This document shows positions 7,468-61,894 of a stretch of DNA of 64,000 nucleotides, piece after piece; within the stretch, counting starts at the first letter, position 1, and every line of letters starts with the position of its first letter. Below the pieces are notes generated by a model, which searched no databases, was not told the origin of the DNA, and saw nothing but the letters and a program-made list of their open reading frames with translations. The position numbers and the translations under genes are program-made. The DNA lies in the IMG/VR virus record IMGVR_UViG_3300042473_001540, positions 186,001-250,000 of that record; one strand, given 5' to 3'.

Positions 7468-7725
7468 GTGAGGAAGCTCACTCCAGATACTGCGGTGAAC
7501 CGCCGGCAATTTCCCTACTTTGTGCGAGTCGTCAACGTGAGTAATTTTTCGCACTACACGGAAATTTGCAGCTGGACTAAACAGCGTTGGGGCTCACCAA
7601 GTAGACTCCACAAAGACGCATTGTGGGCATGTCAGATTGAAACAAGCACTGCTGGAGAGCAGGAGATGTGGATTTGGTTCCGGCATGAAGATGACATGGT
7701 GCTGTTCTCTCTCACTTGGTGCTAG
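7468..7725 (+). CDS. LTW-family small protein
   Basis: Ends WFRHEDDMVLFSLTWC. Confidence 0.8.
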   Translation: MRKLTPDTAVNRRQFPYFVRVVNVSNFSHYTEICSWTKQRWGSPSRLHKDALWACQIETSTAGEQEMWIWFRHEDDMVLFSLTWC

Positions 7726-7731
7726 GGCAAC

Positions 7732-7941
7732 ATGACAGACGTTGAAAGAGAACTAATCAACCTTGGGTTTGATATCCTCAAAGGCTGGCACAGTTGTCGA
7801 CTGAGCAGTCCGTTGCCTGATCAAAAATCCGTTTACAACTGGCTCAACACTACAGATGGCGGACGCTATTGGGTTGGTGTCATCTCCATTTATTTTGAAC
7901 GAGAAGAAGACATGATCCTGTTCCAGCTCACATGGTGTTGA
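7732..7941 (+). CDS. LTW-family small protein
   Basis: Ends YFEREEDMILFQLTWC. Confidence 0.8.
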   Translation: MTDVERELINLGFDILKGWHSCRLSSPLPDQKSVYNWLNTTDGGRYWVGVISIYFEREEDMILFQLTWC

Positions 7942-7957
7942 TTGGTAGGAAGAATAA

Positions 7958-8179
7958 ATGATCGATATTGATCAACAATACCCCAGCGACTACCACACTA
8001 ACCACACTAAAATCCAGGAATGGCATAGCTGTTCTATTCGCCAATTTGTTGGGCCTGATCGACATACCATCCTCCAGTGGCTCAAAACAACAGATGGTGG
8101 CCGCTTTTGGGAGGGCGGAACTCGAGTATGGTTTGAGAGAGAAGAAGACATGATCTTGTTCACGCTCACGTGGTCATAG
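7958..8179 (+). CDS. LTW-family small protein
   Basis: Ends WFEREEDMILFTLTWS. Confidence 0.8.
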   Translation: MIDIDQQYPSDYHTNHTKIQEWHSCSIRQFVGPDRHTILQWLKTTDGGRFWEGGTRVWFEREEDMILFTLTWS

Positions 8180-8182
8180 CCC

Positions 8183-8413
8183 GTGCACGATATCGACAAC
8201 GACTATCTCGCCAAAGGTCACAACCAGAGACGTGACTACAGCATGCTGGACCAATGGCATCTCTGCCAAGTGAATTTCTCCGCCGTTAACGGAGACAAGA
8301 TGTTTAGTTGGCTTGACGCAGCACCTGGGGAACGGTATTATTGGACACGAGCTGGTAACATTTGGTTTGAGAGGGAAGAAGACATGCTCTTGTTCAAGCT
8401 CACATGGTGTTGA
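8183..8413 (+). CDS. LTW-family small protein
   Basis: Ends WFEREEDMLLFKLTWC. Confidence 0.8.
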   Translation: MHDIDNDYLAKGHNQRRDYSMLDQWHLCQVNFSAVNGDKMFSWLDAAPGERYYWTRAGNIWFEREEDMLLFKLTWC

Positions 8414-11492: not shown

Positions 11493-11693
11493 ATGACACT
11501 TTCTCATTGTTACAACACACGGCTAATCAGGATGAGTATTCAAGAAGCCAACAGTCGTATCTGTTGGTGTGCTGATAATTTTGGTGACCGGGATATCAAG
11601 TGGACTGTGCGATGCCACGACAGAAGTCGTTATGAATGGTGGTTTACAAATAAGGATGATTTAATTTGGTTTGGCCTTGTTTGGGAAAGTTGA
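11493..11693 (+). CDS. LTW-family small protein
   Basis: Ends WWFTNKDDLIWFGLVWES. Confidence 0.7.
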   Translation: MTLSHCYNTRLIRMSIQEANSRICWCADNFGDRDIKWTVRCHDRSRYEWWFTNKDDLIWFGLVWES

Positions 11694-11754
11694 CTGAACA
11701 ACAGGGTGTGTTAAGTTTCAGATTGTTGAAACACTCGTGTATGGAGTAGGAAAA

Positions 11755-12033
11755 ATGAACACTCGCGTTTCTGAGTCTCAGCGTCGGGAAAATTCTCGAG
11801 CTATTGCTCGTAGGGATAAATGGCGTCAACAATATGTGGTTGTGGTGAAGGCTATTCGTGAACTCAAAAGCCAAACTCGCGGCCGGCCATATGATCCGGT
11901 GATCAAAGTGCAACTGCGTACAATGAGGCAGCTGGCTTGCGACATGATGTTTGAACGGACGCATTACATCCGTTTTGATCTGGTGAATACAGCATATCCT
12001 TATGCAGCTACAACACTGGAACAAGCTGCATGA
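11755..12033 (+). CDS. Hypothetical basic protein
   Basis: After TTGACT-N16-TAAGTT (11690-11717). Confidence 0.7.
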   Translation: MNTRVSESQRRENSRAIARRDKWRQQYVVVVKAIRELKSQTRGRPYDPVIKVQLRTMRQLACDMMFERTHYIRFDLVNTAYPYAATTLEQAA

Positions 12034-12545
12034 ACAAAGAAACTGTGTTAATGCAGGAGGTAATTGTAAATTATCACCCGCAATTCGCTGACAGCACTCA
12101 ACTTCGTGAGATCGGCATGTTGCGGCCAGAGATTTTCAAGGTGGAAATGCTGATTGAAGAATGTCTGGCGGCATGGGGTCCTTACAACTTGGTCAGAGGG
12201 GATCATCAAGATTTCAGTGATGGAAGTGATTGTAAAACTGCAAGTATTCGATCAGAACCGGTTAAAGCTGGTACAGCATCTCATAAAGGTGAAATCTCAG
12301 GTGTACAAACCAGTGCTGGTGTTGTCAAGCAGGGAGCATTACGGTGTGTAGTTTATAACCCTTGCGAAAACAATATCTTGTATTTTTACTTACCCAAAGA
12401 GTTTTGGACACAAAATATCAATCGGCATCCCACAACTGGTATGGGACGGATCTTTTTCACGTATAATCGTAACACAATGGTAATTCCCAAACTTATTCAA
12501 TATCAAGTGAATAATTTTGAAGAATTAGCAAGGACCACAGGGTAA
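12030..12545 (+). CDS. Hypothetical protein, possible PD-(D/E)xK fold
   Basis: E...DFSDGSDCK pattern; weak. Confidence 0.5.
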   Translation: MNKETVLMQEVIVNYHPQFADSTQLREIGMLRPEIFKVEMLIEECLAAWGPYNLVRGDHQDFSDGSDCKTASIRSEPVKAGTASHKGEISGVQTSAGVVKQGALRCVVYNPCENNILYFYLPKEFWTQNINRHPTTGMGRIFFTYNRNTMVIPKLIQYQVNNFEELARTTG

Positions 12546-12550
12546 CAAGC

Positions 12551-12736
12551 ATGCAGAACCTGGGTGCAGAACTTTGGCCCCACAGAGTTGAAACTCTGGG
12601 GGGCAGTGATCAAGCTGGCATGCGTGGTTGGCTTGAGCGGAACGTGGACTGCACTGCTTGGTTCTTTGCAGCAGCCAATGTTGTGTATTTTTCGCACAAA
12701 GAAGATGCTATGCGATTCAGTTTGATTTGGACATGA
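12551..12736 (+). CDS. LTW-family small protein
   Basis: Ends YFSHKEDAMRFSLIWT. Confidence 0.8.
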   Translation: MQNLGAELWPHRVETLGGSDQAGMRGWLERNVDCTAWFFAAANVVYFSHKEDAMRFSLIWT

Positions 12737-12945
12737 AGTATTGGGCAGCAACCACGTTGGATGAGCCCAGACGTCAGGAAATGTCACGCTGGTGCAACCA
12801 AAGTTTTGGCTACACTGGGTGGATGGTTCACCCCCAGTTTGGGCAATGTGAGGAAGAATGCTATCTCAAATGGAGTTTTTGGTATCAAGCGGATGTTGTT
12901 CTTTTCACCTTGGTTTGGGATGTCGCTGCCAATGAAGATAAGTGA
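12733..12945 (+). CDS. LTW-family small protein
   Basis: WSFWYQADVVLFTLVWD. Confidence 0.75.
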   Translation: MKYWAATTLDEPRRQEMSRWCNQSFGYTGWMVHPQFGQCEEECYLKWSFWYQADVVLFTLVWDVAANEDK

Positions 12946-13133
12946 ACCAACGTGGGACAAAATTATAGCCTATTACCAAACAAAATCTCACATAGATGAT
13001 TATAATTGGGCGAGCTTCAAACAGTGGGTATGTACAACCTATAACGTTGATAAAGTCTATTTGGGTGTTGAGGTTGAACTTGTTTTTTATCTCCCAAGAA
13101 GATGAGGCTGTGTTCGCATTAAGTTGGCTATAA
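12932..13133 (+). pseudogene. LTW-family gene split by a +1 frameshift at T6 (13083-13088)
   Basis: Removing one T gives ...ELVFISQEDEAVFALSWL*, ending next to the following ATG. Confidence 0.7.
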
Positions 13134-13331
13134 ATGGGCCCTACACCGTGGAGCCACTTGCCTTATGAAGTTACCTTGCCCATCAACTCAGTTCACAATC
13201 TGTTGAAGATCAGCATCTGGTGCAACAACAACTTTGGTGACCAACCCATCAAATGGATGTATATTGGGCAAGGTCGCTGGTTGTTTCCTTCAGAGGAGCA
13301 AGCTGCTGAGTTTGCGTTGATTTGGACATGA
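13134..13331 (+). CDS. LTW-family small protein
   Basis: Ends WLFPSEEQAAEFALIWT. Confidence 0.8.
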   Translation: MGPTPWSHLPYEVTLPINSVHNLLKISIWCNNNFGDQPIKWMYIGQGRWLFPSEEQAAEFALIWT

Positions 13332-20515: not shown

Positions 20516-21436
20516 ATGTGGAATCAACCTCCGCGTGACTCCAATCCTCGAATCAACCCTCTACAGGAGACTCCCCGAGTGAACGCTCGATTCATCGCTA
20601 CCATGGTAGGTGGCGCAATGGCTGCTCTGCTGGCACTCACAGTGATCCTCGGCAGCTGGTACACAGTTGATGAGCGTCAGCGCGGTGTGCTGCTCCGCAA
20701 CGGCAAGCTGGTGAGCGTGGTGCAGCCAGGGCTGGGATTCAAAATCCCCTTCATCGACAATGTGGTGCTCATGAGCACCGAGACCGTCCTGCTGCGACTG
20801 GACAAGGAAGCGGTCTACAGCCGAGACCAGCAACCTGCAACTATCACCTTCTCGGTGAGCTGGCGTGTGAGCGAAGACAATGTGGACGATGTCTACAAGG
20901 AGTTTGGCGGGCTCCGAGGAGTTCAAGACCGTGTGATCCTGCCGGGTGTGCGTGACGAGCTCAAGAACGTAATGGGTCGCTACAACGCAGTCACAGCGAT
21001 TCAGGATCGCACCCGACTGGGCACAGATGTCAAGGCGGCCATTGTGGCCAACATCAAAGGGCCGTTTGTGATCGAGAATCTGGCTATTGAAAACATTGAT
21101 TTCAGTGACGCTTACGAAAAATCCATCGAACAGCGAATGCTCGCGGAGGTGGCTGTTGAAAGAGATCGACAGGATGCGATCCGAGAGAAGGTGCAGGCTG
21201 AAATTGTTGTAACCAAAGCGCAGGCCGAAGCTGATGCAGTCAAGGCACGAGCTGGAGCTGAAGCTGAAGCTATCCAACTGCGCGGCGAAGCTGAAGCCAA
21301 GGCCATCCGGGCCCGAGGCGATGCACTTCGCGCGAACGCAGAGCTAGTCACACTTACGGCTGCAGAGCGATGGGACGGTAAGCTCCCTACCACTATGGTC
21401 CCAGGTGCAGCACTGCCCTTTGTGCATGTGAAGTAA
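20516..21436 (+). CDS. SPFH/Band 7/prohibitin family membrane protein
   Basis: TM helix, SWYTVDERQRGVLLRNGK, GLGFKIPF, AEAEA coiled coil. Confidence 0.92.
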   Translation: MWNQPPRDSNPRINPLQETPRVNARFIATMVGGAMAALLALTVILGSWYTVDERQRGVLLRNGKLVSVVQPGLGFKIPFIDNVVLMSTETVLLRLDKEAVYSRDQQPATITFSVSWRVSEDNVDDVYKEFGGLRGVQDRVILPGVRDELKNVMGRYNAVTAIQDRTRLGTDVKAAIVANIKGPFVIENLAIENIDFSDAYEKSIEQRMLAEVAVERDRQDAIREKVQAEIVVTKAQAEADAVKARAGAEAEAIQLRGEAEAKAIRARGDALRANAELVTLTAAERWDGKLPTTMVPGAALPFVHVK

Positions 21437-21442
21437 TCAAAC

Positions 21443-21500
21443 AGAAAGGTGGGTGAAAGCTCACCTTTCTCCTTGACAAAAGTGTCAAACCCGCTAAATT
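21443..21500 (+). terminator. Terminator hairpin abutting an early promoter
   Basis: AGAAAGGTG-ggt-GAAA-gct-CACCTTTCT then TTGACA-N16-TAAATT. Confidence 0.8.
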
Positions 21501-21534
21501 ACAGATGTTGATAAACCAAGTGAGCTATCCACAC

Positions 21535-21690
21535 ATGACCGAAGATCAGATTGAGCGTACCGTGGAACGTGCAACAGATCGCCTGGACGAGCGTTATATG
21601 CGAGGGGAGATCAGCCGGGCACGCTATGCTGATGAAGCTGACAAGCTGAGTACATGGGCTGAACGCGAGTATCGCAGGGCGCGTCGGTGA
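21535..21690 (+). CDS. Small hypothetical protein
   Basis: MTEDQIERTVERATDRLD...; start uncertain. Confidence 0.6.
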   Translation: MTEDQIERTVERATDRLDERYMRGEISRARYADEADKLSTWAEREYRRARR

Positions 21691-22028
21691 AATTGGGACA
21701 ACACCTACACCAACGCCAAATGCTGTTGGATCAAGAGCTGTTGAGAACCACGTTGTTGGCAGTGCAACGTGAGCGAGAACGTGTGCATGACCAGCACTAT
21801 GATCTGGAACGCTTTAAAAGCCAGATCATCAGTTGTGTTTTGGAAAATCGGCCCATGCTCATGTTTACTCCTGGAAATAACTGGACTGACCCTCAAAATC
21901 CTGAACACCCTCCACGTTTTGTGTGCCATCGAGACCACAAGTTATGGCAAGAGTTCCTAGTTTGGTTGGAAAGTGAACACATGGAAATCCAATACCATGG
22001 ATGGAATTTCACTGTGATAGCCAAGTGA
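21687..22028 (+). CDS. Hypothetical protein
   Basis: GTGA overlap. Confidence 0.65.
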   Translation: MKLGQHLHQRQMLLDQELLRTTLLAVQRERERVHDQHYDLERFKSQIISCVLENRPMLMFTPGNNWTDPQNPEHPPRFVCHRDHKLWQEFLVWLESEHMEIQYHGWNFTVIAK

Positions 22029-22309
22029 CAGAAGACAGAGTCTTCCACAATGCGCTGCTTTTGTTTCCCAAAGATCTTTTCTGCTGCTCTGTTACACTTG
22101 GCGAGGAATACTACCGCCAACAATACGAAATCTTGGATTGGCTACGCCAACAAGGACCTGGTGACACTGGAATTGGTGATCCACCACAAGGTGAGTGCGT
22201 TTGGGCATATACACAGCTTTTTGGATACCAGTATATCGCTTTCCCCACTAGGGAACTGGTGACGCATTTTCAGCTGGTTTGGCAAAACAACACAGGACAT
22301 AGTGGTTGA
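22025..22309 (+). CDS. LTW-family protein
   Basis: YIAFPTRELVTHFQLVWQ. Confidence 0.7.
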   Translation: MTEDRVFHNALLLFPKDLFCCSVTLGEEYYRQQYEILDWLRQQGPGDTGIGDPPQGECVWAYTQLFGYQYIAFPTRELVTHFQLVWQNNTGHSG

Positions 22310-22358
22310 CACGGATGTGCAGACTCTGTATGTTGTGGGTGTTGCAAAGGAGACGGAT

Positions 22359-23084
22359 ATGCGAATTGATGTGCCCAGCATCGTAAATGATCCCCAGATG
22401 AGAACCTTGCCCTATTGGCTGGAGGTATATCCCAATCAGGATCAAGCTCGCCGGGCTCGAGCACTGGCTCGCAAGGCGTATGATCGCACACGGCTAGCTG
22501 AGGTGCAGCGTTGGCGCTGCTGCTGGTGTCACTGCGAGATGCGTGGCGAACAAGGCTTCAAGAACAGTGCCACCATTGAGCACATCACTCCTCGCAGTTG
22601 TGGTGGCACTGACCACATCACCAACTTGGCTGTGGCGTGTGGCCGATGCAACAACCGTCGAGGCAACACGCCCTGGGAAGATTTCCTGCAGGCTATGGAA
22701 ATGAGTCGGCCCGCGCCTGAGACTGGCAGCTTTCGCTCACTGGCTTTTGAACGTAAGATGCGCCGAGAGGCTGCTGAGCAGAACAAGCGCATCAAGCAGT
22801 TGACTCATTTGGTGCGCAACCACGAGGTGCAAGCCACTGCTACTCAAACGCGACGCGAACAGTGCAAGTCACTGGAAGCCCAATACTCAGACATGCTGCC
22901 AGGATTGCAGCTGGCTGGTTTCCAACGAGCCAAGAGGATGCGTCGCGAAGTTGACCGTCAACTGGCACTGCAAGCCCTCTCACAAAAGGTCAGCAACCCT
23001 TTTGAAGTGGACAGTCGGCCCTGGCGCATCTACGAGCGTATGCGTAACAAGCAGAGTGTTGACACACTGCAAGCAGCCGCTTAA
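22359..23084 (+). CDS. HNH endonuclease
   Basis: CCWC...ATIEHITPRSCGGTDHITNLAVACGRCNNRRG; promoter at 22306. Confidence 0.85.
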   Translation: MRIDVPSIVNDPQMRTLPYWLEVYPNQDQARRARALARKAYDRTRLAEVQRWRCCWCHCEMRGEQGFKNSATIEHITPRSCGGTDHITNLAVACGRCNNRRGNTPWEDFLQAMEMSRPAPETGSFRSLAFERKMRREAAEQNKRIKQLTHLVRNHEVQATATQTRREQCKSLEAQYSDMLPGLQLAGFQRAKRMRREVDRQLALQALSQKVSNPFEVDSRPWRIYERMRNKQSVDTLQAAA

Positions 23085-23092
23085 ATAAGGTT

Positions 23093-23386
23093 ATGAAAAG
23101 GTTCCTTGTTGCATTCATGTTGCTGTCCTCCAGTCCCTGTTGGGCGCAAGGATACCACTACCGCCCCTATGGCTATACTCCTGCGCCTCACTACCGCCAC
23201 CATCACCATAACCACGGTGGCGGAAACTGGGTAGCCCCTCTTGTAGGGGGCATTGTTGGCGGTGCAGTGTTGGGCGCTATCATTGCACCAAACATCTATG
23301 CTCCTGCACCAGAGCCCATTTGCACTGATAGGCTAGTGGGATATGATGTTTATGGTCGTGCCGTTGTGGAACGTTTTTGTAGGTAA
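23093..23386 (+). CDS. Small secreted protein with His/Tyr/Pro-rich segment and glycine zipper
   Basis: Signal peptide MKRFLVAFMLLSSSPCWA; GGIVGGAVLGAII; TAAATA at 23082. Confidence 0.75.
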   Translation: MKRFLVAFMLLSSSPCWAQGYHYRPYGYTPAPHYRHHHHNHGGGNWVAPLVGGIVGGAVLGAIIAPNIYAPAPEPICTDRLVGYDVYGRAVVERFCR

Positions 23387-23430
23387 AGTGTGCCTGCAGC
23401 CAGCACATCAATCATCCGAAAACAAACCAG

Positions 23431-23458
23431 TTGACAACCTTGCAAAACCTGCTATAAC
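23431..23458 (+). promoter_or_regulatory. Early promoter
   Basis: TTGACA-N16-TATAAC with TGC. Confidence 0.7.
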
Positions 23459-23485
23459 TCACGCAACGCAACAGAGGATACAGCA

Positions 23486-24388
23486 ATGAGTCACTTCACC
23501 GTTATGGTTATTGGGCCTGACCATGAAGCCCAGCTTGCTCCCTACCACGAGTTTGAATGCACTGGTGTGGCAGACCAGTATGTGGTGGATGTGGACGTCA
23601 CTGACAAGTTCCTTGCCGATATGAAAGATGCGGAGGAACATGCAGAGGAAGACCAATCTGCCCTTGACTATGCGCTGGAATATTACGGTTTTGAAGACCA
23701 GGTAGTTGAAGATGAGAGCGAAGTTGATCGAGAGGGTGAGCACAAGTTTGGATTTGTGGTGGTCCGGGACGGTGAGCTCGTCCGGGCTGTGAAGCGCACC
23801 AACCCCAACAAGCAGTGGGACTGGTACGAGGTTGGTGGGCGATGGACTGGCACGCTCAAGCTCAAGCCTGGTGCAAAGGGTGTGCAAGGCCGCCCTGGAC
23901 TGGGAACCCAAGGAGCAAAACAAGGGTATGCTGACCAGGCGAGGATGGGAGACATCGACTGGGCAGGCATGCGTGACGAGGCAGGCGAGAAGGCCGGAGT
24001 CTATTGGGATCGGGTGCGGGCACTTGCTCCAAATGTTTGGGAAAGCTGGGACAGTGTGATTTCACGCTTCCCCAGGGACACTGACGGTGCTCGAAATTTC
24101 TATCATAACCAAACGGGCAGGCAGGCCCTGCACCAAGCCAAAGACTTGTTTTGGTGTGAGGACTCGGTGCTGGTCGGCCGTGAAGAGTATGTGCAAACTG
24201 CTCGAGACAGTGCTGGCATGACCTTTGCATTTGTCAAGGACGGTGCGTGGATGGAGCGCGGCAGCATGGGCTGGTGGGGCATGAGCACAGACGACATGCC
24301 CAAGAGTGAGTGGTATGCTCGGATGAATGAGATGATCAACGGACTGCCCGAGGACACACTGATCACCATTGTTGACTGCCACATCTAG
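23486..24388 (+). CDS. Conserved phage hypothetical protein
   Basis: MSHFTVMV...NPNKQWDWYEVGGRW...MGWWG...TIVDCHI pattern. Confidence 0.8.
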   Translation: MSHFTVMVIGPDHEAQLAPYHEFECTGVADQYVVDVDVTDKFLADMKDAEEHAEEDQSALDYALEYYGFEDQVVEDESEVDREGEHKFGFVVVRDGELVRAVKRTNPNKQWDWYEVGGRWTGTLKLKPGAKGVQGRPGLGTQGAKQGYADQARMGDIDWAGMRDEAGEKAGVYWDRVRALAPNVWESWDSVISRFPRDTDGARNFYHNQTGRQALHQAKDLFWCEDSVLVGREEYVQTARDSAGMTFAFVKDGAWMERGSMGWWGMSTDDMPKSEWYARMNEMINGLPEDTLITIVDCHI

Positions 24389-24400
24389 CCAAAAAACGGG

Positions 24401-24428
24401 TTGACAGCCCTGAAAATCGTGCTATACT
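24401..24428 (+). promoter_or_regulatory. Early promoter
   Basis: TTGACA-N16-TATACT with TGC. Confidence 0.8.
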
Positions 24429-24456
24429 GCCCACAGTAGCTGGAAAGGCGCTGAAC

Positions 24457-25674
24457 ATGCACTACACGTTTCCCGAGATCACGCACCTGGATCAAGTGCT
24501 GGAAGCTGTCCAGGGTGTGGAAGGCTTCATTGTAGCCCAGCGGCCCTGGGGCACTGTGGTCAACTACATTCAGATGGGCCCGGACATGTTCCCCGAGGTC
24601 CATACTGCTGGAGGCAGCGCCAGCATGCGCGAGCGGCAGACTCGACTCAAGGCTATCCGCCGGGAGTGTAGGGGGCTGCTGTTCAGCCTTGATGGAAAGT
24701 TGGTGAGCCGCGCATTTCAGAAGTTTTGGAACGTGGGCGAACGGCGCGAGACTTTGATTGAAAACATCGATCTCACTCAGCCACACATCATCCTTGAGAA
24801 GTTGGATGGAAGTATGATTCGTGCTCTACCTCTAGGTAAGGGCTACTGTCTTGCAACCAAGATGGGGCCCACTGCTGTAGCAGCACAGGTTGAGCCGTTC
24901 GTGGCAACTCGAGACAACTATGACCGATTTATCCGAGACACACTGGAGCAGGGATACACTGCCTGTTTCGAGTGGTGTACTCGTCAACAAAAGATTGTGT
25001 GTGATTATCCAGTTGATCGACTGGTGCTGACTGCTGTGCGTCACATCAACTCGGGTGAGTATCTCACCTACTCTCAGATGCAGGAACTGGCGGCCGAGTA
25101 TGAGCTGGATCTAGTCAAGGCCTATCCTGGTACTGTGGCTAGCATGGAGCAGCTCGTTCGGGAGACGCATGAGCTGGAAGGCGAGGAGGGGTGGATCATC
25201 CGGTGGGATGATGGACATATGGCCAAGTTGAAATCGGCCTGGTATGTGCGTATCCACCGTGCCAAGGATGCTCTCACGCAGGAGAAGAACCTCATCGACC
25301 TCATGCTGGCGGAAAAGCTGGACGACGTCAAGAGCTTTCTGCCTGTGGAGGACCTGGCTCGCATCGACGCCTACGAGAACGCCTTCTGGACGGGTGTGGG
25401 GCAAACTGCCTACATATGGAAGGACCAGTATGTCAAGCTCCGGCGGCAGTTTGGTGACGATAGAAAGCGGTTTGCACTGGAGGCAGCACCGGGTCTTGAG
25501 CCCAACCTGCGTAGTGCTGTGTTCAAGGTCTGGGCCCGTGAGGGCCACGTGGACTGGCGTGAGCTGGTGTGCGATGTGATCCGCAAATGCACTGGCACGC
25601 AGACCCGGGTGGACGAGGCACGCTCACTGTTCCGTGCGCCGCGGTGGAGCCAGCAAAGTGTGGGAGACGAATGA
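24457..25674 (+). CDS. T4 Rnl1/RnlA-like RNA ligase
   Basis: ECRGLLF, RAFQKFWN, motif I EKLDGS, FEWC, EGWII, KLKSAWY. Confidence 0.9.
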   Translation: MHYTFPEITHLDQVLEAVQGVEGFIVAQRPWGTVVNYIQMGPDMFPEVHTAGGSASMRERQTRLKAIRRECRGLLFSLDGKLVSRAFQKFWNVGERRETLIENIDLTQPHIILEKLDGSMIRALPLGKGYCLATKMGPTAVAAQVEPFVATRDNYDRFIRDTLEQGYTACFEWCTRQQKIVCDYPVDRLVLTAVRHINSGEYLTYSQMQELAAEYELDLVKAYPGTVASMEQLVRETHELEGEEGWIIRWDDGHMAKLKSAWYVRIHRAKDALTQEKNLIDLMLAEKLDDVKSFLPVEDLARIDAYENAFWTGVGQTAYIWKDQYVKLRRQFGDDRKRFALEAAPGLEPNLRSAVFKVWAREGHVDWRELVCDVIRKCTGTQTRVDEARSLFRAPRWSQQSVGDE

Positions 25675-25865
25675 TGGCCTACAAAGGTGACACGGTGAAG
25701 TTTCGAGTGAGCAGTCCCAACGGCACTTGGCGCACAGTCTCCACGCTGGAAGAGGCTGAGCAAGAGATCAAAACTCTGGTGGACACCTATGGTGTGGCCT
25801 GGGCCGCAGTGGATAGGATTGAGACCACAAGGATCCTTGTTCGGCAAGTCAAGGCTGATGAGTGA
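25671..25865 (+). CDS. Hypothetical protein
   Basis: ATGA overlap. Confidence 0.6.
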   Translation: MMAYKGDTVKFRVSSPNGTWRTVSTLEEAEQEIKTLVDTYGVAWAAVDRIETTRILVRQVKADE

Positions 25866-26085
25866 CTCTTACCTTGTAACTTTGGTAGCGCCTATGTGCG
25901 ATGATTTTGATCAAGTGTGTGATTGGTGCATGCAACAATGGCCGTGTAAGGAGCGGCGCTGGCATATACACTGGGCTGGATTAACAACTAGAGGCAAGGG
26001 GTGGCAAATCACTTGCAGTTTCTGGCACCAAGATGATCTCACCATGTTCCTGCTCACATGGGCGCACCTGGTTGAATCTAGATAA
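25858..26085 (+). CDS. LTW-family protein (TWxHLV subtype)
   Basis: SFWHQDDLTMFLLTWAHLVES. Confidence 0.8.
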   Translation: MSDSYLVTLVAPMCDDFDQVCDWCMQQWPCKERRWHIHWAGLTTRGKGWQITCSFWHQDDLTMFLLTWAHLVESR

Positions 26086-26098
26086 ACAGGCGATAGTG

Positions 26099-26338
26099 AT
26101 GGCTATACTGCCCTACACAGCCACATTGGTAGCACCCAAACTCCGGGAGCTTGACCAAGTTCAGGAATGGTGCCTACAAATGTGGCCTTGTACTCATCGA
26201 GCCACATGGTATCAAGATAATATGACAATGCAAGTATTTGCAAGGTTTGAATTCAAATGCACCTGGAGTTTTCAGTTTCGAGAAGATCTCACCATGTTCC
26301 TGCTGACCTGGAGTCATTTGGTGGACAGCCATGAGTGA
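26099..26338 (+). CDS. LTW-family protein (TWxHLV subtype)
   Basis: SFQFREDLTMFLLTWSHLVDS. Confidence 0.8.
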   Translation: MAILPYTATLVAPKLRELDQVQEWCLQMWPCTHRATWYQDNMTMQVFARFEFKCTWSFQFREDLTMFLLTWSHLVDSHE

Positions 26339-26585
26339 TGCATATGTTGTGACAGTGATGGCTTACTCACTTGAAGAATTTATCCCAGTTTACAACTGGT
26401 GCTGCCGCATGTGGGGCGATACAAGCTTGTATCAGACTTGGTGTATGGGTTGGGCTAATTCAGATCTTTTGCGTGGAGTATATGTTTGCGATTGGGCTTT
26501 TCAACACAAGGATGATCTCATCATGTTTTTACTGACTTGGGGTCATTTGGTTGACTCTAGCCAAGAGGCAGAAAGTTGTGAATGA
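26331..26585 (+). CDS. LTW-family protein (TWxHLV subtype)
   Basis: AFQHKDDLIMFLLTWGHLVDS. Confidence 0.8.
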   Translation: MSDAYVVTVMAYSLEEFIPVYNWCCRMWGDTSLYQTWCMGWANSDLLRGVYVCDWAFQHKDDLIMFLLTWGHLVDSSQEAESCE

Positions 26586-26854
26586 CAAGTTCAAGATAAC
26601 ATTGAGTGCCCACACAAAGGGAGAACTCGAAGCTGTGAATCTATGGTGCCAACAGTTGTGGCCAGGTGAGTGCGGGACAGTATGGGACAGCGGATGGCCA
26701 CTACCTACAACTTTTTTTTAGAGCAGGTGGCATCACTGCGTGGCGTTGCAGTTGGTGGTTGACACGCAGGGAAGATCATGCTATGTTCCTGTTGACATGG
26801 GCACATTTGGTAGAGCCGCCCCAGAATTACACAAGGTATCCTCAAAGTGAATAA
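26578..26854 (+). pseudogene. LTW-family gene split by a +1 frameshift at T8 (26712-26719)
   Basis: Frame 0 reads MNDKFKITLSAH...PTTFF*; the +1 frame continues RAGG...REDHAMFLLTWAHLVE. Confidence 0.75.
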
Positions 26855-29428: not shown

Positions 29429-29704
29429 ATGAGCCAAGACTTGGACGACGATTGGGATTGGGAAGAATTTTTCCGTCAATTTCCCTGTGGTGCGGCTGTG
29501 ATTTTTGGTAACCATGTGGTGCATGCTGAGGGGTATCCTGAACCAGTCTCGGACATTGACGAAACTGAATTGCGCAAAGAGTTGGCAGAAGATCACGAGC
29601 TGGAACTGACCCTTCTCCGAGATTACTCAGTCATACGATTGGAAGGAGATAACTGGCGCCAGTTGATGCAGCAGTATGCAGGTGCAGATGGCACGCAGAA
29701 ATAA
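29429..29704 (+). CDS. Hypothetical acidic protein
   Basis: 91-aa ORF. Confidence 0.65.
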   Translation: MSQDLDDDWDWEEFFRQFPCGAAVIFGNHVVHAEGYPEPVSDIDETELRKELAEDHELELTLLRDYSVIRLEGDNWRQLMQQYAGADGTQK

Positions 29705-29927
29705 GACGCCACAACGGATCAAACCCCGCCGAGGATGGCACCGCGTGGTGTTGCCCAATGTACCCAATCCTTGGCGTGAGTTACTGACGGGCATGCCATC
29801 AACTGTGTCAAAGATTGACGACTGGCTGGCAGAAAACACCTCTGGCAAATGTGAGCAGTTTCGCTACAACACATGGGACTTCAAACGCCAAGAAGATGCC
29901 CTGTTGTTTACCTTGACGTGGGGATAG
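29688..29927 (+). CDS. LTW-family protein
   Basis: Ends WDFKRQEDALLFTLTWG. Confidence 0.8.
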   Translation: MARRNKTPQRIKPRRGWHRVVLPNVPNPWRELLTGMPSTVSKIDDWLAENTSGKCEQFRYNTWDFKRQEDALLFTLTWG

Positions 29928-29928
29928 C

Positions 29929-30264
29929 ATGGAAATAAAAATCACCAAACAAACTGTCCTTGCCCCTGTGCGTAAGTTGAGCGCAACTTGGACAATGGAA
30001 AAACCACAAACATTGAAACACACTGTGAGCGATGAGATCGAGCAACTTATCCAGGAAGAGATCAACAGTGAAATTTTAGCCGAAATATATCGAGTCCAAG
30101 GATGGTATCTTGTACCCCTCACTGCTCACAGCGTCTGGACAAAAGGCGCAGTGACGCCATGGCTCTTGGAACATTACCCAGATGGTGGTTACTATCTCTT
30201 CACTGGTGGTTGCATGTTCCGGGACAAAGAGATGGCTGTGGAGTTTGAGCTCACATGGACATAA
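29929..30264 (+). CDS. LTW-family protein fused to a gp23 major-capsid-like segment
   Basis: N-terminus IKITKQTVLAPVRKLSATWTME...EEINSEILAEI; C-terminus MFRDKEMAVEFELTWT. Confidence 0.7.
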   Translation: MEIKITKQTVLAPVRKLSATWTMEKPQTLKHTVSDEIEQLIQEEINSEILAEIYRVQGWYLVPLTAHSVWTKGAVTPWLLEHYPDGGYYLFTGGCMFRDKEMAVEFELTWT

Positions 30265-30467
30265 TACCCAAGTTCAGTTTCCTGCATCGTGTGGAATATC
30301 GGGATCTGCCCGAAGACCCGAGAGTTATGAACTATGGAGAATCTCGCACACAAATGATCATATGGTGCTGGAAAAATCTTCCTTTGAGCGATTGGTCGCA
30401 TGACCCCTTGGGTATTGATTTCAAGCATCAAGAAGGTCTCATGCAGTTTATGTTAACGTGGACATGA
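30255..30467 (+). CDS. LTW-family protein
   Basis: Ends DFKHQEGLMQFMLTWT. Confidence 0.8.
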   Translation: MDIIPKFSFLHRVEYRDLPEDPRVMNYGESRTQMIIWCWKNLPLSDWSHDPLGIDFKHQEGLMQFMLTWT

Positions 30468-30685
30468 TTGTTACCAAGTGCTTGCCCGGCGGTGGATGGT
30501 ATGCCGAAGTCATGCTGGACGATAGTGAATGGCCACCAATTGATGAAAATGACCAATGGTTAGACAGACCCATTCGACGTTGGGTAAGAGAACACACTGA
30601 GGGAGCACATTTTTTCAGTTTTAGGGGAACAATACTGTTCAGTAACGAAAGTGATCTCACAGCGTTTGTGGTCTCTTGGTCATAA
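30458..30685 (+). CDS. LTW-family protein
   Basis: Ends LFSNESDLTAFVVSWS. Confidence 0.75.
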   Translation: MDMIVTKCLPGGGWYAEVMLDDSEWPPIDENDQWLDRPIRRWVREHTEGAHFFSFRGTILFSNESDLTAFVVSWS

Positions 30686-30693
30686 CACGTAGA

Positions 30694-30933
30694 GTGGCCC
30701 GCTTTTTGGAAAAGGAGAAGGATCCTCTCTACCCTTATCCGGTTGTGTTTGACAACATGGAAGTCTCTGAGGCTGAAATACTTCGAGCCTGGCTAAGACA
30801 GCATGGTGGCCGAGAAAACGAGGATTGGGCTTGGACTCATGGATGGTGGGGAGATACCGTTCACTGTTTTAGGTTTCGAGATCCTTGCACAGCAGAGTTT
30901 TTCCGCTTGACTTGGCACCCAACAAGCGTATAG
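30694..30933 (+). CDS. LTW-family protein
   Basis: FRFRDPCTAEFFRLTWH. Confidence 0.75.
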   Translation: MARFLEKEKDPLYPYPVVFDNMEVSEAEILRAWLRQHGGRENEDWAWTHGWWGDTVHCFRFRDPCTAEFFRLTWHPTSV

Positions 30934-30940
30934 TTGCAGT

Positions 30941-31108
30941 ATGAAATACGACTCAGATATATGGTGTTGTGAGATTCTGCTGGCACGCTATCAGCAAGGA
31001 TGTTTACAACATACCAATCTATCTTCTTGCCCTGATTTTTTGGTGAATTGGGCAGCACAATCTCAATTGTTTTGTAGGCAGTGGAAAACAAAAAATGAAC
31101 ACCAATAA
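30941..31108 (+). CDS. Small hypothetical protein (not in the ORF track)
   Basis: 55-aa ORF filling the gap between genes. Confidence 0.4.
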   Translation: MKYDSDIWCCEILLARYQQGCLQHTNLSSCPDFLVNWAAQSQLFCRQWKTKNEHQ

Positions 31109-31523
31109 TCCCAAAACTGTTTGGCACGAGGATGGAACCAGCCCAGTTCCTGGCTCGCGTGTATTTGTTTTTGGCAGCAATCTCGCTGGCATTCACGGTG
31201 CCGGAGCGGCCCGGGAGGCTGCCGCTAAATTTGGTGCCCTGTATGGTTGCGGCCATGGCTGGCAACCTCTCAATCAAAGCTATGCCATTCCCACCAAGGA
31301 CCGTCGAATCCACACCCTAGCTTTGGATGAGATCAAACTCTATATTGATGAATTTGTGCGACTCACACAAAGCCCGTTTGTTATGAATAGTGGTTATTGG
31401 GTCACCCGAGTGGGCTGTGGCCTAGCTGGTTACCAAGACCACGACATTGCACCATTGTTCCGTGGCGCAGTAAATTGCAGTTTTCCTTTGCCTTGGCGCC
31501 AGTATTTGGAGCTTGAGACTTGA
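31095..31523 (+). CDS. A1S_2505-like / macro-domain-like phage protein
   Basis: VFVFGSNLAGIHGAGAA...SYAIPTK...VTRVGCGLAG. Confidence 0.75.
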   Translation: MNTNNPKTVWHEDGTSPVPGSRVFVFGSNLAGIHGAGAAREAAAKFGALYGCGHGWQPLNQSYAIPTKDRRIHTLALDEIKLYIDEFVRLTQSPFVMNSGYWVTRVGCGLAGYQDHDIAPLFRGAVNCSFPLPWRQYLELET

Positions 31524-31832: not shown

Positions 31833-32120
31833 ATGAGCAGTGAATATCAGCATTTGAAAACTCTTGCATCGGAAATTTTCCGGCTGATGGGCGAGGAGAG
31901 TTTCACAGAGATAGACAGCATCTTGAGCAATATGCAGCCTACACTTCAAACAGAAGTAGAGATGGTGGCACTGCTACGCTACAGTTTTACAGCTCGGCAT
32001 CATCTCACCTGTTACCATATCTATCTTGACGCAGTAGCACAGGAATTGCTGCGTCGTGGCAAAGATGTGGAGAGGATTTTGCAGGGACTGCCCTTCTACA
32101 GCATCGATAGGTATCCATGA
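31833..32120 (+). CDS. Hypothetical protein
   Basis: Fits the operon. Confidence 0.65.
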   Translation: MSSEYQHLKTLASEIFRLMGEESFTEIDSILSNMQPTLQTEVEMVALLRYSFTARHHLTCYHIYLDAVAQELLRRGKDVERILQGLPFYSIDRYP

Positions 32121-32383
32121 GTCAGCAGGCTGCGCAGACTAGGGAGGCACATTTGTTGAATCACCAACCAGTTGACTGGGCAGATGATGTGATGGGGTTT
32201 CCCTACGCAGTCGCATGCAAGGTCACAGTGGTGGATTTGTGGCTTCGAACCAACTGGTGCAAGCAAAACATTGGCTGCTGGTTGGTAGATTGGACTCACA
32301 CATATGATAACCACCGGCAGGTGTATTGGTACTGTTTCTCTAGTCAGGAGCAATTGACACAGTTTCAACTCACATGGTGTTGA
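32117..32383 (+). CDS. LTW-family protein
   Basis: Ends YCFSSQEQLTQFQLTWC. Confidence 0.8.
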   Translation: MSQQAAQTREAHLLNHQPVDWADDVMGFPYAVACKVTVVDLWLRTNWCKQNIGCWLVDWTHTYDNHRQVYWYCFSSQEQLTQFQLTWC

Positions 32384-33832: not shown

Positions 33833-34489
33833 ATGTTAGATACTATGGCAGATGTGATGCGCACAGCCTACGAGAGAGGTTGGATCACCACAAGAGACGG
33901 AAATGTAAGCATGCGACGAGCAGTACAAAACTGCATGTATATTACACCAACAGGAGTTCGCAAACAGGTTCTCACCAGCGAGAGCATGATCAAGCTGTAT
34001 TTTCCTGAAGACCGGATGAGTTCAGATGCATGGAGCAGGATGACTCGTGCTGATGACCTTTACCAACAGCGAATCATTGGCTTGCGTCCCAGTGGTGAAC
34101 TGCCCTTCCACTATTGGCTACAAGTTAACACGCCTACTTCAAATCGTGTTGTGTTGCATCTTCATCCCACTCACATTGTGGCTGCAATGTATGCTGGTAT
34201 GGATCTACAACAGATTGTACGTGATTTTCCTGAGCTTGAGAACCACACAACTGTAGGCCCAACTGTGGGCAAAGTACAAGCGCAAAGCACAGATCTTGGC
34301 TCAGCTGTTGCCCAAGCTTTTGATGTGCAACCTGATGGAGGCATCAATAGCCACATAATTGGGTTGCACATGCATGGCGTAGTAGCAGTGGATGTGGATC
34401 CTTGGTCAGCCTATGGTCACATCGAGAGATTGAACCATGTGTGTGAGATTGTGTTGGCTGCTGGAGGAATGCGTGACCAAACCCGTTGA
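33833..34489 (+). CDS. Class II aldolase/adducin family protein
   Basis: DGNVSMR, ITPTG, PSGELPFH, VLHLHP, HGVVAV. Confidence 0.88.
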   Translation: MLDTMADVMRTAYERGWITTRDGNVSMRRAVQNCMYITPTGVRKQVLTSESMIKLYFPEDRMSSDAWSRMTRADDLYQQRIIGLRPSGELPFHYWLQVNTPTSNRVVLHLHPTHIVAAMYAGMDLQQIVRDFPELENHTTVGPTVGKVQAQSTDLGSAVAQAFDVQPDGGINSHIIGLHMHGVVAVDVDPWSAYGHIERLNHVCEIVLAAGGMRDQTR

Positions 34490-58940: not shown

Positions 58941-59444
58941 ATGAATAAAAAACATTTGAGTTTTGATGATATTACTGTTCTTACCTACAGTCTTTGCGAT
59001 AATATAGAGGCGTCAGGTTGGCAGCCCTCGATTGTTGTTGGCATTACTAGGGGTGGCCTCCTTACAGCCAAAATGTTGAGTCATTATTGGAAAGTGCCTA
59101 TGTGCACAATTGATGTGAGCTTGCGGGACTATACCTTATGGAGCGAAGATTTCAATACCAATTTGGTAATTGAGGCATTCAATGGTCACAATCTTCTTGT
59201 GGTTGATGATATAAACGACAGTGGTGCAACAGGGATCAAGATCAAAAACACTTGGACCACTGTAGTGAACAGTTTGCCAGAACATCAATCATTATGGCCC
59301 AAAAACAATATCAAATTTGGCGTGCTGTTGGAAAATGAAGTCAGCTCTCACCAAAGTGACTTTTGGGGCTCAAAAATCAACAAGGAACAAGATCCCATTT
59401 GGTATGTTTTTCCTTGGGAGATCCAACGGGGCAAGGGTGATTGA
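58941..59444 (+). CDS. Type I phosphoribosyltransferase
   Basis: GITRGG; PRPP loop LVVDDINDSGAT; WYVFPWE. Confidence 0.88.
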   Translation: MNKKHLSFDDITVLTYSLCDNIEASGWQPSIVVGITRGGLLTAKMLSHYWKVPMCTIDVSLRDYTLWSEDFNTNLVIEAFNGHNLLVVDDINDSGATGIKIKNTWTTVVNSLPEHQSLWPKNNIKFGVLLENEVSSHQSDFWGSKINKEQDPIWYVFPWEIQRGKGD

Positions 59445-59640
59445 AAAAACACACAATCTATTGTTTCCTTGGAGCGTGAGAATGAACTTTGATGTGGTGG
59501 ATTGGACACCTATGGACCATTGGTGTGTAGAGCATTTTGGCAATGAAGGTGTGTTGTGGAGCATTGGTTGGGAGAATGGCACGTGGGATTTTCAAAAATT
59601 TGAGGATGCAATGATGATGTGGCTGACATGGGTGAGATAA
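59437..59640 (+). CDS. LTW-family protein
   Basis: Ends WDFQKFEDAMMMWLTWVR. Confidence 0.75.
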   Translation: MIEKTHNLLFPWSVRMNFDVVDWTPMDHWCVEHFGNEGVLWSIGWENGTWDFQKFEDAMMMWLTWVR

Positions 59641-60480: not shown

Positions 60481-61068
60481 ATGATCACCATTGTGAAAAA
60501 GTCCACACAAAATCGTCGAGCACTCTTGGGCCAAACTGGTAAACAGTTTGTGAGAATGTCGGGCGATGCCGTGCGCTCCATTGTGGAGAAAAATACTTTT
60601 GATCCCACTTTGGCTTTTTGGGTTCATTGGTACAATCAAGCACCTGCCCTTGATTTCGATGCAACTGCGCTCACACCAAAGCAATGCCAAGATTTGATTG
60701 AGCTTGTGACGTTGCAGACCAAAAAAGATCTTGAAAATATTCTCAAGTATCTTGATGAGATCAGGCTAGATCAAGAATATTGGCGCACCGTGTCAGAAAA
60801 GCTGAGCCAAGGGCTTGAACCACCCAACGCCCCATATTTCTTTTGGGACCCGCCTGTCGGCATCCCAGACTTCTCCCGGTGGACGCAAGCTGATGCGCCA
60901 AATCAAGAGTGGCTGGAACATGTAGACAATCGCCTCAAGAGACTGAAGGTAGTTGAGCGCGACTACCGCAAGTCAGCCAGGCTCCACCAGGATCGCTTGA
61001 ACGACACATACATTTGGGCAGATGTGCAGACCGAAACTGTGCGCACCACTGTCATCACTCCAGTTTGA
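60481..61068 (+). CDS. Hypothetical protein
   Basis: AAGGA RBS, 195 aa. Confidence 0.7.
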   Translation: MITIVKKSTQNRRALLGQTGKQFVRMSGDAVRSIVEKNTFDPTLAFWVHWYNQAPALDFDATALTPKQCQDLIELVTLQTKKDLENILKYLDEIRLDQEYWRTVSEKLSQGLEPPNAPYFFWDPPVGIPDFSRWTQADAPNQEWLEHVDNRLKRLKVVERDYRKSARLHQDRLNDTYIWADVQTETVRTTVITPV

Positions 61069-61075
61069 GGGTCAC

Positions 61076-61894
61076 ATGAGCAAGGACAGTCTTGGCGACA
61101 GGATGAAGCTGCTGGAACAGCAGGAAACTGATCGACGCTTCCTGTTCAGCTTGCCCATCTATGCGCGTATTGACGGACGGGGCTTCAGCAAGTTCACCAA
61201 GGACATGGAGCGACCTTACGACACTGGCATGACCACTAGCATGATCGAAACCACTCGAACCTTGGTGGAGAAAACCCAAGCTACTCTCGGGTATGTTCAA
61301 AGTGACGAGATCAGCTTGGTGTGGGTGCCCACAGGCAATGGCCATGGTTGGTTTGATGGCAAGATAACCAAGATGACCAGTGTGCTGGCTGGCCTGGCCA
61401 CAGCAGCATTCATTGAGAATGTTATTCAGTATTTTCCCAACTGGCAGCAGCTGGTGCTCCGCCTGCCGCACTTTGATGCAAGAGTCATCAGCATGCCCAG
61501 TTTGAGTGAGACGGCGAACATGTTACTTTGGCGCAATCTTGATTGTGCCAAAAATTCCGTGAGCATGGCTGCCCATCACTATCGCAGCCACAAAGAGCTG
61601 CAAGGCCTAGATCAAAAACAGCAACAGGAACTCATTTGGCAAAGTGGCGTCAACTGGAGCTCATATCCCGCAGCATTCAAGCGAGGAACTTGGGTACGTC
61701 GACGTGTAGTGCAACGCACGTTGAATGACTCTGAGCTGGGGTTGATTCCGGAAAACTACAGGCCAGATCCCGGCACACTGTTTGCCCGGAGCGAGGTGCA
61801 AAGCTATGATCTGCCTCCTCTCAATCGAGTCACAAACCGAGTGGCTGTGCTGTTTGAAGACGCACCGCCTGAATACAAAACAGATAACCCTTGA
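61076..61894 (+). CDS. tRNA(His) guanylyltransferase Thg1-like protein
   Basis: ARIDGRGFSKFT...PYD...YVQSDEISL...FDARV...W-R-x-x-D-x-x-x-NS-x-S-M. Confidence 0.92.
   Translation: MSKDSLGDRMKLLEQQETDRRFLFSLPIYARIDGRGFSKFTKDMERPYDTGMTTSMIETTRTLVEKTQATLGYVQSDEISLVWVPTGNGHGWFDGKITKMTSVLAGLATAAFIENVIQYFPNWQQLVLRLPHFDARVISMPSLSETANMLLWRNLDCAKNSVSMAAHHYRSHKELQGLDQKQQQELIWQSGVNWSSYPAAFKRGTWVRRRVVQRTLNDSELGLIPENYRPDPGTLFARSEVQSYDLPPLNRVTNRVAVLFEDAPPEYKTDNP

Follow-up and report, generated by a model that had tools for sequence, protein, structure and literature searches.

Introduction

The major capsid protein of T4-type phages, gp23, and the vertex protein gp24 belong to the Pfam family PF07068 and adopt the HK97 fold, in which an N-arm, an E-loop or insertion domain, a P domain and an A domain are combined in a protein of about 400-520 aa. 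Residue-level descriptions of the T4 head (PMC9546572) place head-length mutations in gp23 at A268V, A275T, D285V and D287V/N, close to the short, negatively charged P-domain helix that makes inter-capsomer charge contacts at the quasi-threefold axes. In addition, H282 and M284 contact the portal whisker, the gp31-bypass sites G292, V306 and V307 lie in the spine helix, and the length mutations A94V and G97S lie in the N-arm. Major capsid proteins are among the commonest triggers of bacterial anti-phage immunity, and certain sensors read short motifs (PMC9712102, PMC13581612). A short, highly conserved peptide in the first quarter of gp23, the 29-residue Gol region, binds EF-Tu and activates the Lit protease of the e14 prophage, and it acts on its own as a ligand for host proteins (PMC3014915).

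Several other small proteins act on capsids or on host components. The capsid-redirecting proteins of phage satellites (P4 Sid, SaPI CpmA/CpmB and the capsid-protein homologue Ccm) are small accessory proteins, some of them derived from capsid proteins, that act on capsid-protein contacts. Mimics and sponges encoded by phages serve as counter-defence (PMC13728456). Ocr, for example, is a DNA mimic, and other proteins of this kind are sponges for nucleotide signals. The internal proteins of T4 (IPI-III) carry a short N-terminal capsid-targeting sequence that determines an interaction with the assembling head, and their cargo domain acts in the host.

In this study, we examined a gene of a jumbo T4-like phage that joins a segment resembling gp23 to a small domain, which we call LTW. 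The gene lies in a stretch of 64,000 nucleotides (hereafter, the window) of the IMG/VR virus record IMGVR_UViG_3300042473_001540. An earlier note, made from the sequence alone, had described a gp23-like segment of about 55 aa followed by a complete LTW C-terminus. It had inferred that a capsid fragment expressed in an early accessory operon could act as a decoy for capsid-sensing immunity or interfere with capsid assembly, and that LTW modules carry interchangeable N-terminal cargo. The observation in that note is confirmed by our analysis. Its interpretation is only partly supported.

Results

The gene and its neighbors

The open reading frame encodes a 111-aa protein and sits in a tight, same-strand array. 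Its ATG follows the stop codon of the upstream LTW gene by one base, and its end overlaps the ATG of the next gene at 30255. The features of the window are as follows.

29920..29924 (+), Shine-Dalgarno-like GGGGA, 5-9 nt upstream of the ATG; the TAG stop of the upstream gene is at 29925-29927.
29929..30264 (+), the gene, 111 codons plus TAA, encoding an acidic (pI 5.1) cytoplasmic protein made of a gp23-derived piece and an LTW domain.
29929..30099 (+), residues 1-57, the gp23-derived piece, predicted as an unstructured strand (residues 1-32) plus a helix (33-56).
30100..30261 (+), residues 58-111, the LTW domain, predicted as beta(60-63)-alpha(72-82)-beta(88-91)-beta(94-97)-alpha(100-110) and ending in FELTWT.
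29676..29927 (+), upstream LTW-only paralog (83 aa, basic N-terminus), translationally abutting the gene (LTW profile, E 1.4e-15).
30255..30933 (+), three downstream LTW-only paralogs in overlapping tandem, 30255-30467, 30458-30685 and 30676-30933 (E 3e-14, 1e-14 and 1.3e-14).
7468..8413 (+), tandem of four LTW-only paralogs of the same domain family, 7468-7725, 7732-7941, 7958-8179 and 8183-8413 (E 2e-14 to 1e-18).
25789..26585 (+), three further LTW paralogs, 25789-26085, 26033-26338 and 26331-26585 (E 9e-16, 1e-12 and 6e-10).
32117..32383 (+), LTW-only paralog of 88 aa (E 5e-17).
59317..59640 (+), LTW paralog of 107 aa (E 8e-18) with a 60-aa N-terminal extension of unknown origin that has no match within the phage.

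Within the same array, a 142-aa ORF at 31095-31523 (+) matches phrog_2072, a family of unknown function (E 2e-33), has no Pfam hit and contains a glycine-rich motif, GSNLAGIHGAGAA. The flanking context of the small-gene array (20516-25674 and 33833-34489) comprises a glycosyltransferase, an HNH endonuclease, a T4 Rnl1-type RNA ligase (405 aa) and a class II aldolase. On the opposite strand beyond it lie dCMP deaminase, DUF6524 and SprT-like genes. These labels were taken from precomputed Pfam hits on a near-identical contig.

The two parts of the protein

The absence of any significant profile hit of the N-terminus to gp23 had been named beforehand as the result that would refute the observation, and this is not what was found. 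Residues 1-56 match Pfam PF07068 at E 1.3e-6, with 28.5 bits against a curated cut-off of 24.4, over profile positions 134-197 of 376. They also match PHROG phrog_138 (major head protein) at E 4e-7. BLASTP against the phage's own gp23, which was found at the other end of the 133.7-kb viral record holding the window, gave 23/53 identical residues (43%) at E 4e-9 over gp23 residues 169-221. Against solved structures, the family profile aligned to T4 gp23 residues 252-307 (E 2e-4) and to gp24 residues 162-228. Furthermore, an hhalign comparison of the family alignment (A2) with a gp23 alignment gave a probability of 98.6% and E 9.6e-16, limited to columns 1-59. Because this alignment stops at column 59, we rejected the idea that the LTW domain descends from the part of gp23 that follows the spine helix. 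The protein is therefore a capsid-protein fragment and not a capsid protein: only a small part of the Pfam profile is covered, and the model contains one helix plus a small alpha/beta domain rather than a complete HK97 fold.

The C-terminus (residues 58-111) is a complete LTW domain and a true member of a paralogous family, with a similarity far beyond chance. A profile built from 14 paralogs, with this ORF left out, hits residues 75-111 at E 1.4e-5, in a region that includes the C-terminal F-x-L-T/S-W motif, and finds about 20 members in the window. In the reverse direction, the C-terminal profile of the ORF family finds the paralogs at E down to 2e-11, including 16 in the 328.6-kb copy of the genome at E of 0.01 or better. 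W78 is invariant, and W59, F97, A103, F106 and W110 are nearly invariant.

The copied segment is one of the most invariant stretches of gp23. When the numbering of the structural alignment is combined with the T4 head structure paper (PMC9546572), the stretch 252-307 contains the head-length sites A268, A275, D285 and D287, the portal-whisker contacts H282 and M284, and the gp31-bypass sites. We assign it to a P-domain beta-strand, the start of the short acidic P-domain helix and most of the spine helix. The assignment of residues 252-267 to the strand leading from insertion-domain linker 2 into the P domain is an inference from HK97 topology. Column by column, the best-conserved N-terminal residues of the family (R15, L17, S18, A19, W21, T22, E24, Q27, E44, I45, D46 and E48) are the very positions that are invariant in gp23, and the acidic loop between them is shortened and variable. 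However, some family members (e.g., P0093, P0018 and P0036 of alignment A2) keep the full-length gp23 loop (AQDL.AVH...) and score far better against PF07068 than the ORF of the window, which has an 8-residue shortening. This suggests either uneven divergence or repeated re-copying from gene 23.

The phage genome

The phage's own capsid protein is 75% identical to that of Sinorhizobium phage Phosso (469 kb) and 64-68% identical to those of PA5oct-type Pseudomonas phages and the Rak2/G17/XbC2 group. Identical copies of the ORF lie on IMG/VR records of 223, 310 and 329 kb, and the 328.6-kb record is estimated to be 77% complete. This is therefore a jumbo T4-like phage of roughly 430 kb. The intact gene 23 lies next to a scaffold-like gene, whereas the ORF lies outside the head module, 96 kb away in the longer copy of the genome.

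A widespread family

The fusion is not a local, one-off event. A word-based search found nine clusters of full-length orthologs at 62-98% identity. Across seven of these orthologs, Nei-Gojobori dN/dS is about 0.15-0.3 in both halves (about 0.2 in the N-terminal half), although synonymous sites are near saturation. Synteny between the Rnl1-type RNA ligase gene and the class II aldolase gene is kept even for a 35%-identical member. An exhaustive profile search of 1.84 billion representatives returned 112 clusters (at 50% identity) at E of 0.001 or better, nearly all of them 95-116 aa long and matched over positions of about 3-110. Full-length gp23 proteins were not among them. Many distant members resemble gp23 more strongly than the ORF of the window does, for example P0018 at E 7e-13, and 35 of 63 aligned members hit PF07068 on their own. 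There is no nucleotide similarity left to the phage's own gene 23: the in-register identity is 47.8%, with 18 of 53 third positions identical. A recent copy from gene 23 was rejected on this evidence, and the capture is old.

A sister family with another capsid motif

On a 125-kb contig of a different large phage, the gene immediately upstream of family member P0018 encodes a 133-aa protein (L012:5603-6004, in our locus numbering). Its residues 5-48 match gp23 residues 75-112 of the window phage (50% identity, E 3e-12; PF07068 41.7 bits at profile positions 3-42), and its residues 82-130 are an LTW domain (hhalign 95.7%, E 1e-8). A precomputed 'Gad2' label on a neighbor of these genes was not reproduced with our Pfam search and is not used here. 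A second, unrelated contig repeats the pattern, with a 113-aa protein carrying the same motif plus LTW (L060:1490-1831) about 450 bp from family member P0019. Therefore, both kinds of fusion sit in one gene array on two independent contigs. A search with both sequences found at least 41 clusters of 112-175 aa, on contigs up to 518 kb, and their alignment matches gp23 at E 8e-20 and the LTW part of A2 at E 6e-14. The motif (consensus VLLPxIRRVMPNIIAxxIIGVQPMTGP) belongs to the N-arm and is the most conserved part of the first quarter of gp23, which is how the Gol region is described (PMC3014915). The equation with Gol is an inference from position and conservation, and it concerns the sister family only. 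The idea that the ORF of the window carries the Gol peptide was rejected because its piece maps to T4 gp23 252-307.

The window's phage has two tandem LTW proteins of this subtype outside the window (L045:1056-1729, equivalent to 61056-61729 of G001, a record of the same phage). Their domains nest inside the sister-family clade (36% identity to the L012 protein, E 4e-11), but they lack the gp23 motif, which could reflect loss or replacement of the capsid piece. The tree of the LTW domain is poorly resolved (58 columns), and it allows, but does not prove, a single origin for each fusion type. Two further capsid-like pieces were observed. In the same phage, a 210-aa ORF between the DNA polymerase C-terminus and a sliding-clamp-like gene (L024:1288-1920; G001 79369-80001) has weak similarity to the gp23 A domain, with 20.1 bits to PF07068 (below the cut-off) at profile positions 213-316 and BLASTP E 4e-4 to the phage's own gp23, and may be a third capsid-derived piece. 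In a complete 212-kb phage (G004), a short ORF inside a tRNA cluster (L063:2414-2671) carries a sequence like the spine-helix piece (hhalign 98%, E 2e-13 to A2) but no LTW domain. Its 5′ end as listed overlaps a tRNA-Ala gene, and the true start is probably later.

Predicted structure

The AlphaFold2 model based on the 63-sequence alignment has a mean pLDDT of 79. Residues 1-32 have no secondary structure (pLDDT about 60), residues 33-56 form a helix, and residues 59-110 form a beta-alpha-beta-beta-alpha domain (pLDDT about 88). The sister-family model is analogous and shows the same core: the capsid-derived residues 1-45 have pLDDT 44-56, and the C-terminal domain is at about 90. In both models, a flexible capsid peptide sits on a folded carrier. 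No specific known relative of the carrier was found. Foldseek against the PDB gave nothing at E of 0.001 or better, AlphaFold DB clusters gave nothing, and a wide VIA-align search gave Z of at most 5.8, to generic KH, RRM and secretin N-domain-like small alpha/beta sandwiches, below the level considered meaningful for that method. BFVD and the Atlas returned only uncharacterised viral proteins, including one of Agrobacterium phage Atu_ph07. Co-folding of the phage's own gp23 with the ORF, using an alignment without proteins from annotated records, scored 0.00, a value that with this method is no evidence either way.

The LTW domain family and its context

The LTW family is a large expansion of a small, phage-specific, acidic, tryptophan-rich domain. 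About 20 ORFs lie in the window (7468-8413, 11493-13331, 25789-26854, 29676-30933, 32117-32383 and 59317-59640), and at least 28 lie in the 328.6-kb record, all on one strand and most at 121-146 kb. Their median length is 84 aa, their median pI is 5.4 and their tryptophan content is 6.7%. LTW-only paralogs have a short helix before the conserved GW. Among cultured relatives, Phosso has about 20 LTW-only ORFs, annotated as hypothetical, Paride has one, and XbC2 and G17 have none. None of these four has a capsid-piece fusion. Apart from the ORF studied here, none of the other 27 LTW paralogs of this phage has an N-terminus resembling another protein of the phage. The earlier suggestion that LTW modules carry interchangeable cargo is supported in one striking respect, the second gp23 motif of the sister family, but it is not supported as a general rule.

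Strong sigma-70-like promoters (TTGACA-N16-18-TAnnnT) are concentrated over the LTW arrays: 34 of 47 plus-strand sites lie at 115-205 kb. In the window, 26 promoter-like sites were found against 14.9 +/- 4.4 expected. This is the pattern of T4-type early regions and fits early expression, although it is consensus evidence only. The T4 late-promoter motif TATAAATA is uninformative in this phage because it is absent upstream of its gene 23.

Neither the fusion families nor the LTW domain has a model of its own in Pfam, PHROGs or NCBIfam. Searches of GenBank phages by tblastn with the ORF, P0018, an LTW paralog and a sister-family member found no full-length counterpart, and our literature searches found no description of capsid-fragment proteins. 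We therefore consider these proteins to lie outside the kinds described so far, with a function that is inferred only.

Discussion

We believe, tentatively, that the gene encodes a molecular mimic, and we give this reading a probability of about 0.38. In this view, the protein would be made from an early-type gene array before gp23 accumulates and would compete with authentic gp23 for a partner that reads the invariant motif. The partner that we consider most likely is a host factor or abortive-infection sensor that recognises short conserved capsid motifs, as Lit does with the Gol peptide and EF-Tu, and as CapRel does. The protein would then occupy or blunt that sensor, acting as a decoy or sponge. 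The homology of the two parts, the breadth of the family, purifying selection, the retention of the gp23-invariant residues, the existence of a sister family with a second gp23 motif and, in the models, a disordered peptide on a folded domain have been demonstrated by our analysis. By contrast, early timing, mimicry as the mode of action, the identity of the partner, and any decoy or assembly-interfering activity are inferred.

The retention of the gp23 invariants is expected if the same partner surface is read, and two different invariant motifs, one of them inferred to be the Lit trigger region, were recruited to the same carrier. The predicted arrangement of an unstructured peptide on a confident domain is a display architecture. 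The gene also has accessory character: in addition to its distance from gene 23 and its patchy distribution, with absence from Phosso, Paride, XbC2 and G17 and from GenBank phages, it evolves faster than gp23, with 62-98% identity among the ortholog clusters found by sequence search against 77-96% for the best 120 gp23 matches, although these two hit lists are not the same set of phages. However, a trigger-like peptide could activate rather than block a sensor, and fold-enveloping sensors such as Avs7 (PMC13581612) would not be fooled by a 55-residue piece. Moreover, the piece of this ORF is not the Gol region, no sensor of its segment is known, no partner was identified, and early expression rests on consensus promoter motifs only.

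A bolder extension, which we regard as doubtful although the evidence does not rule it out, is that LTW proteins are a peptide-display platform of jumbo T4-like phages. Early-made carriers would present the two most invariant motifs of the major capsid protein, the Gol-equivalent N-arm motif and the P-domain/spine segment, to host proteins of the Lit/EF-Tu-like or CapRel-like type, and capsid-triggered abortive infection would thus be disarmed before gp23 appears. This would be the first counter-defence built from fragments of the phage's own immune trigger.

The main alternative, less likely in our judgement, is that the protein modulates capsid assembly. The displayed segment would bind gp23 itself, capping the inter-capsomer contact or the spine-helix region, and might restrain premature or aberrant polymerisation, influence capsid geometry or chaperonin dependence in a very large capsid, or poison the assembly of co-infecting related phages. 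The copied segments of both families are precisely those where T4 head-length mutations map, and that of the present family also holds the chaperonin-bypass sites (PMC9546572). The gp23-invariant residues are retained, and satellites redirect capsid assembly with capsid-protein homologues. However, the gene is not in the head module, and it is missing from close cultured relatives whose gp23 is 64-75% identical, so it is not needed for assembly as such. In addition, the gp23 segment is almost invariant within the clade, so a competitor-poisoning fragment would also hit the phage's own capsid.

It is also possible, but somewhat less likely again, that an old capture of a gp23 strand and helix now simply serves as a structural or oligomerisation extension, the function lying in the LTW domain as it would in the LTW-only paralogs. 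Most LTW proteins have no capsid piece, the helix of the piece is modelled with fair confidence next to the domain, and no nucleotide similarity to gene 23 remains. However, this reading does not explain why the positions conserved across more than 60 divergent members are the gp23 invariants, why a second, unrelated gp23 motif was independently joined to the same domain and kept, or why residues 1-32 stay conserved although they are predicted to be unstructured. We consider it improbable that the piece is a capsid-targeting tag through which the LTW domain would co-assemble with or bind the prohead and be delivered into the next host. Jumbo phages package many small proteins and the piece derives from capsid-lattice contact elements (PMC9546572), but the promoter context looks early rather than late, no prohead-protease-type processing motif was identified by eye, and the protein is acidic and is not known to carry a T4-type N-terminal targeting sequence. 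Although hyperplastic regions of T4-like phages contain gene fragments, chance similarity or a non-functional relic of recombination is refuted by the homology statistics, purifying selection, conserved synteny and the 112 clusters.

Major capsid proteins cannot easily mutate their invariant motifs. A widespread class of small phage proteins that copy exactly those motifs onto a carrier domain points either to a new counter-defence logic (self-derived decoys) or to a new layer of capsid-assembly control in the largest T4-like phages, and either would be new biology. The finding also provides a concrete and easily synthesised set of proteins of about 110-130 aa for study with capsid-sensing defences, EF-Tu binding and gp23 assembly, and it defines a new, highly expanded phage domain, for which the cultured phage Phosso offers a laboratory entry point.

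Compared with gp23 and gp24, the protein shares residues homologous to gp23 169-225 of the phage's own protein and keeps the invariant residues. However, it has only about 57 of some 400 residues, lacks the A domain, insertion domain, N-arm and P-loop, and cannot form an HK97 fold or a shell. In addition, its piece is fused to an unrelated domain. Compared with the Gol peptide, which is part of gp23 itself and not a separate gene, the ORF carries a different segment, outside the first quarter of gp23, and it is the sister family that carries the inferred Gol-equivalent motif on the LTW domain. The capsid-redirecting proteins of satellites are encoded by elements that parasitise a helper phage, whereas this gene lies in the phage's own genome, in an early-type array, and carries only a fragment, and any effect on assembly is hypothetical. 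The mimics and sponges used as counter-defence are small, acidic, early accessory proteins that act by occupying a host component, as is proposed for the present protein, but none of them is known to be built from a piece of the phage's own structural protein, and no sequence or fold relation to the present protein was found in the structure searches. Finally, the T4 internal proteins resemble the present case in that a short N-terminal peptide precedes a separate domain, but no similarity to their targeting sequence is known, the promoter context of the present gene looks early, and its packaging would be conjectural.
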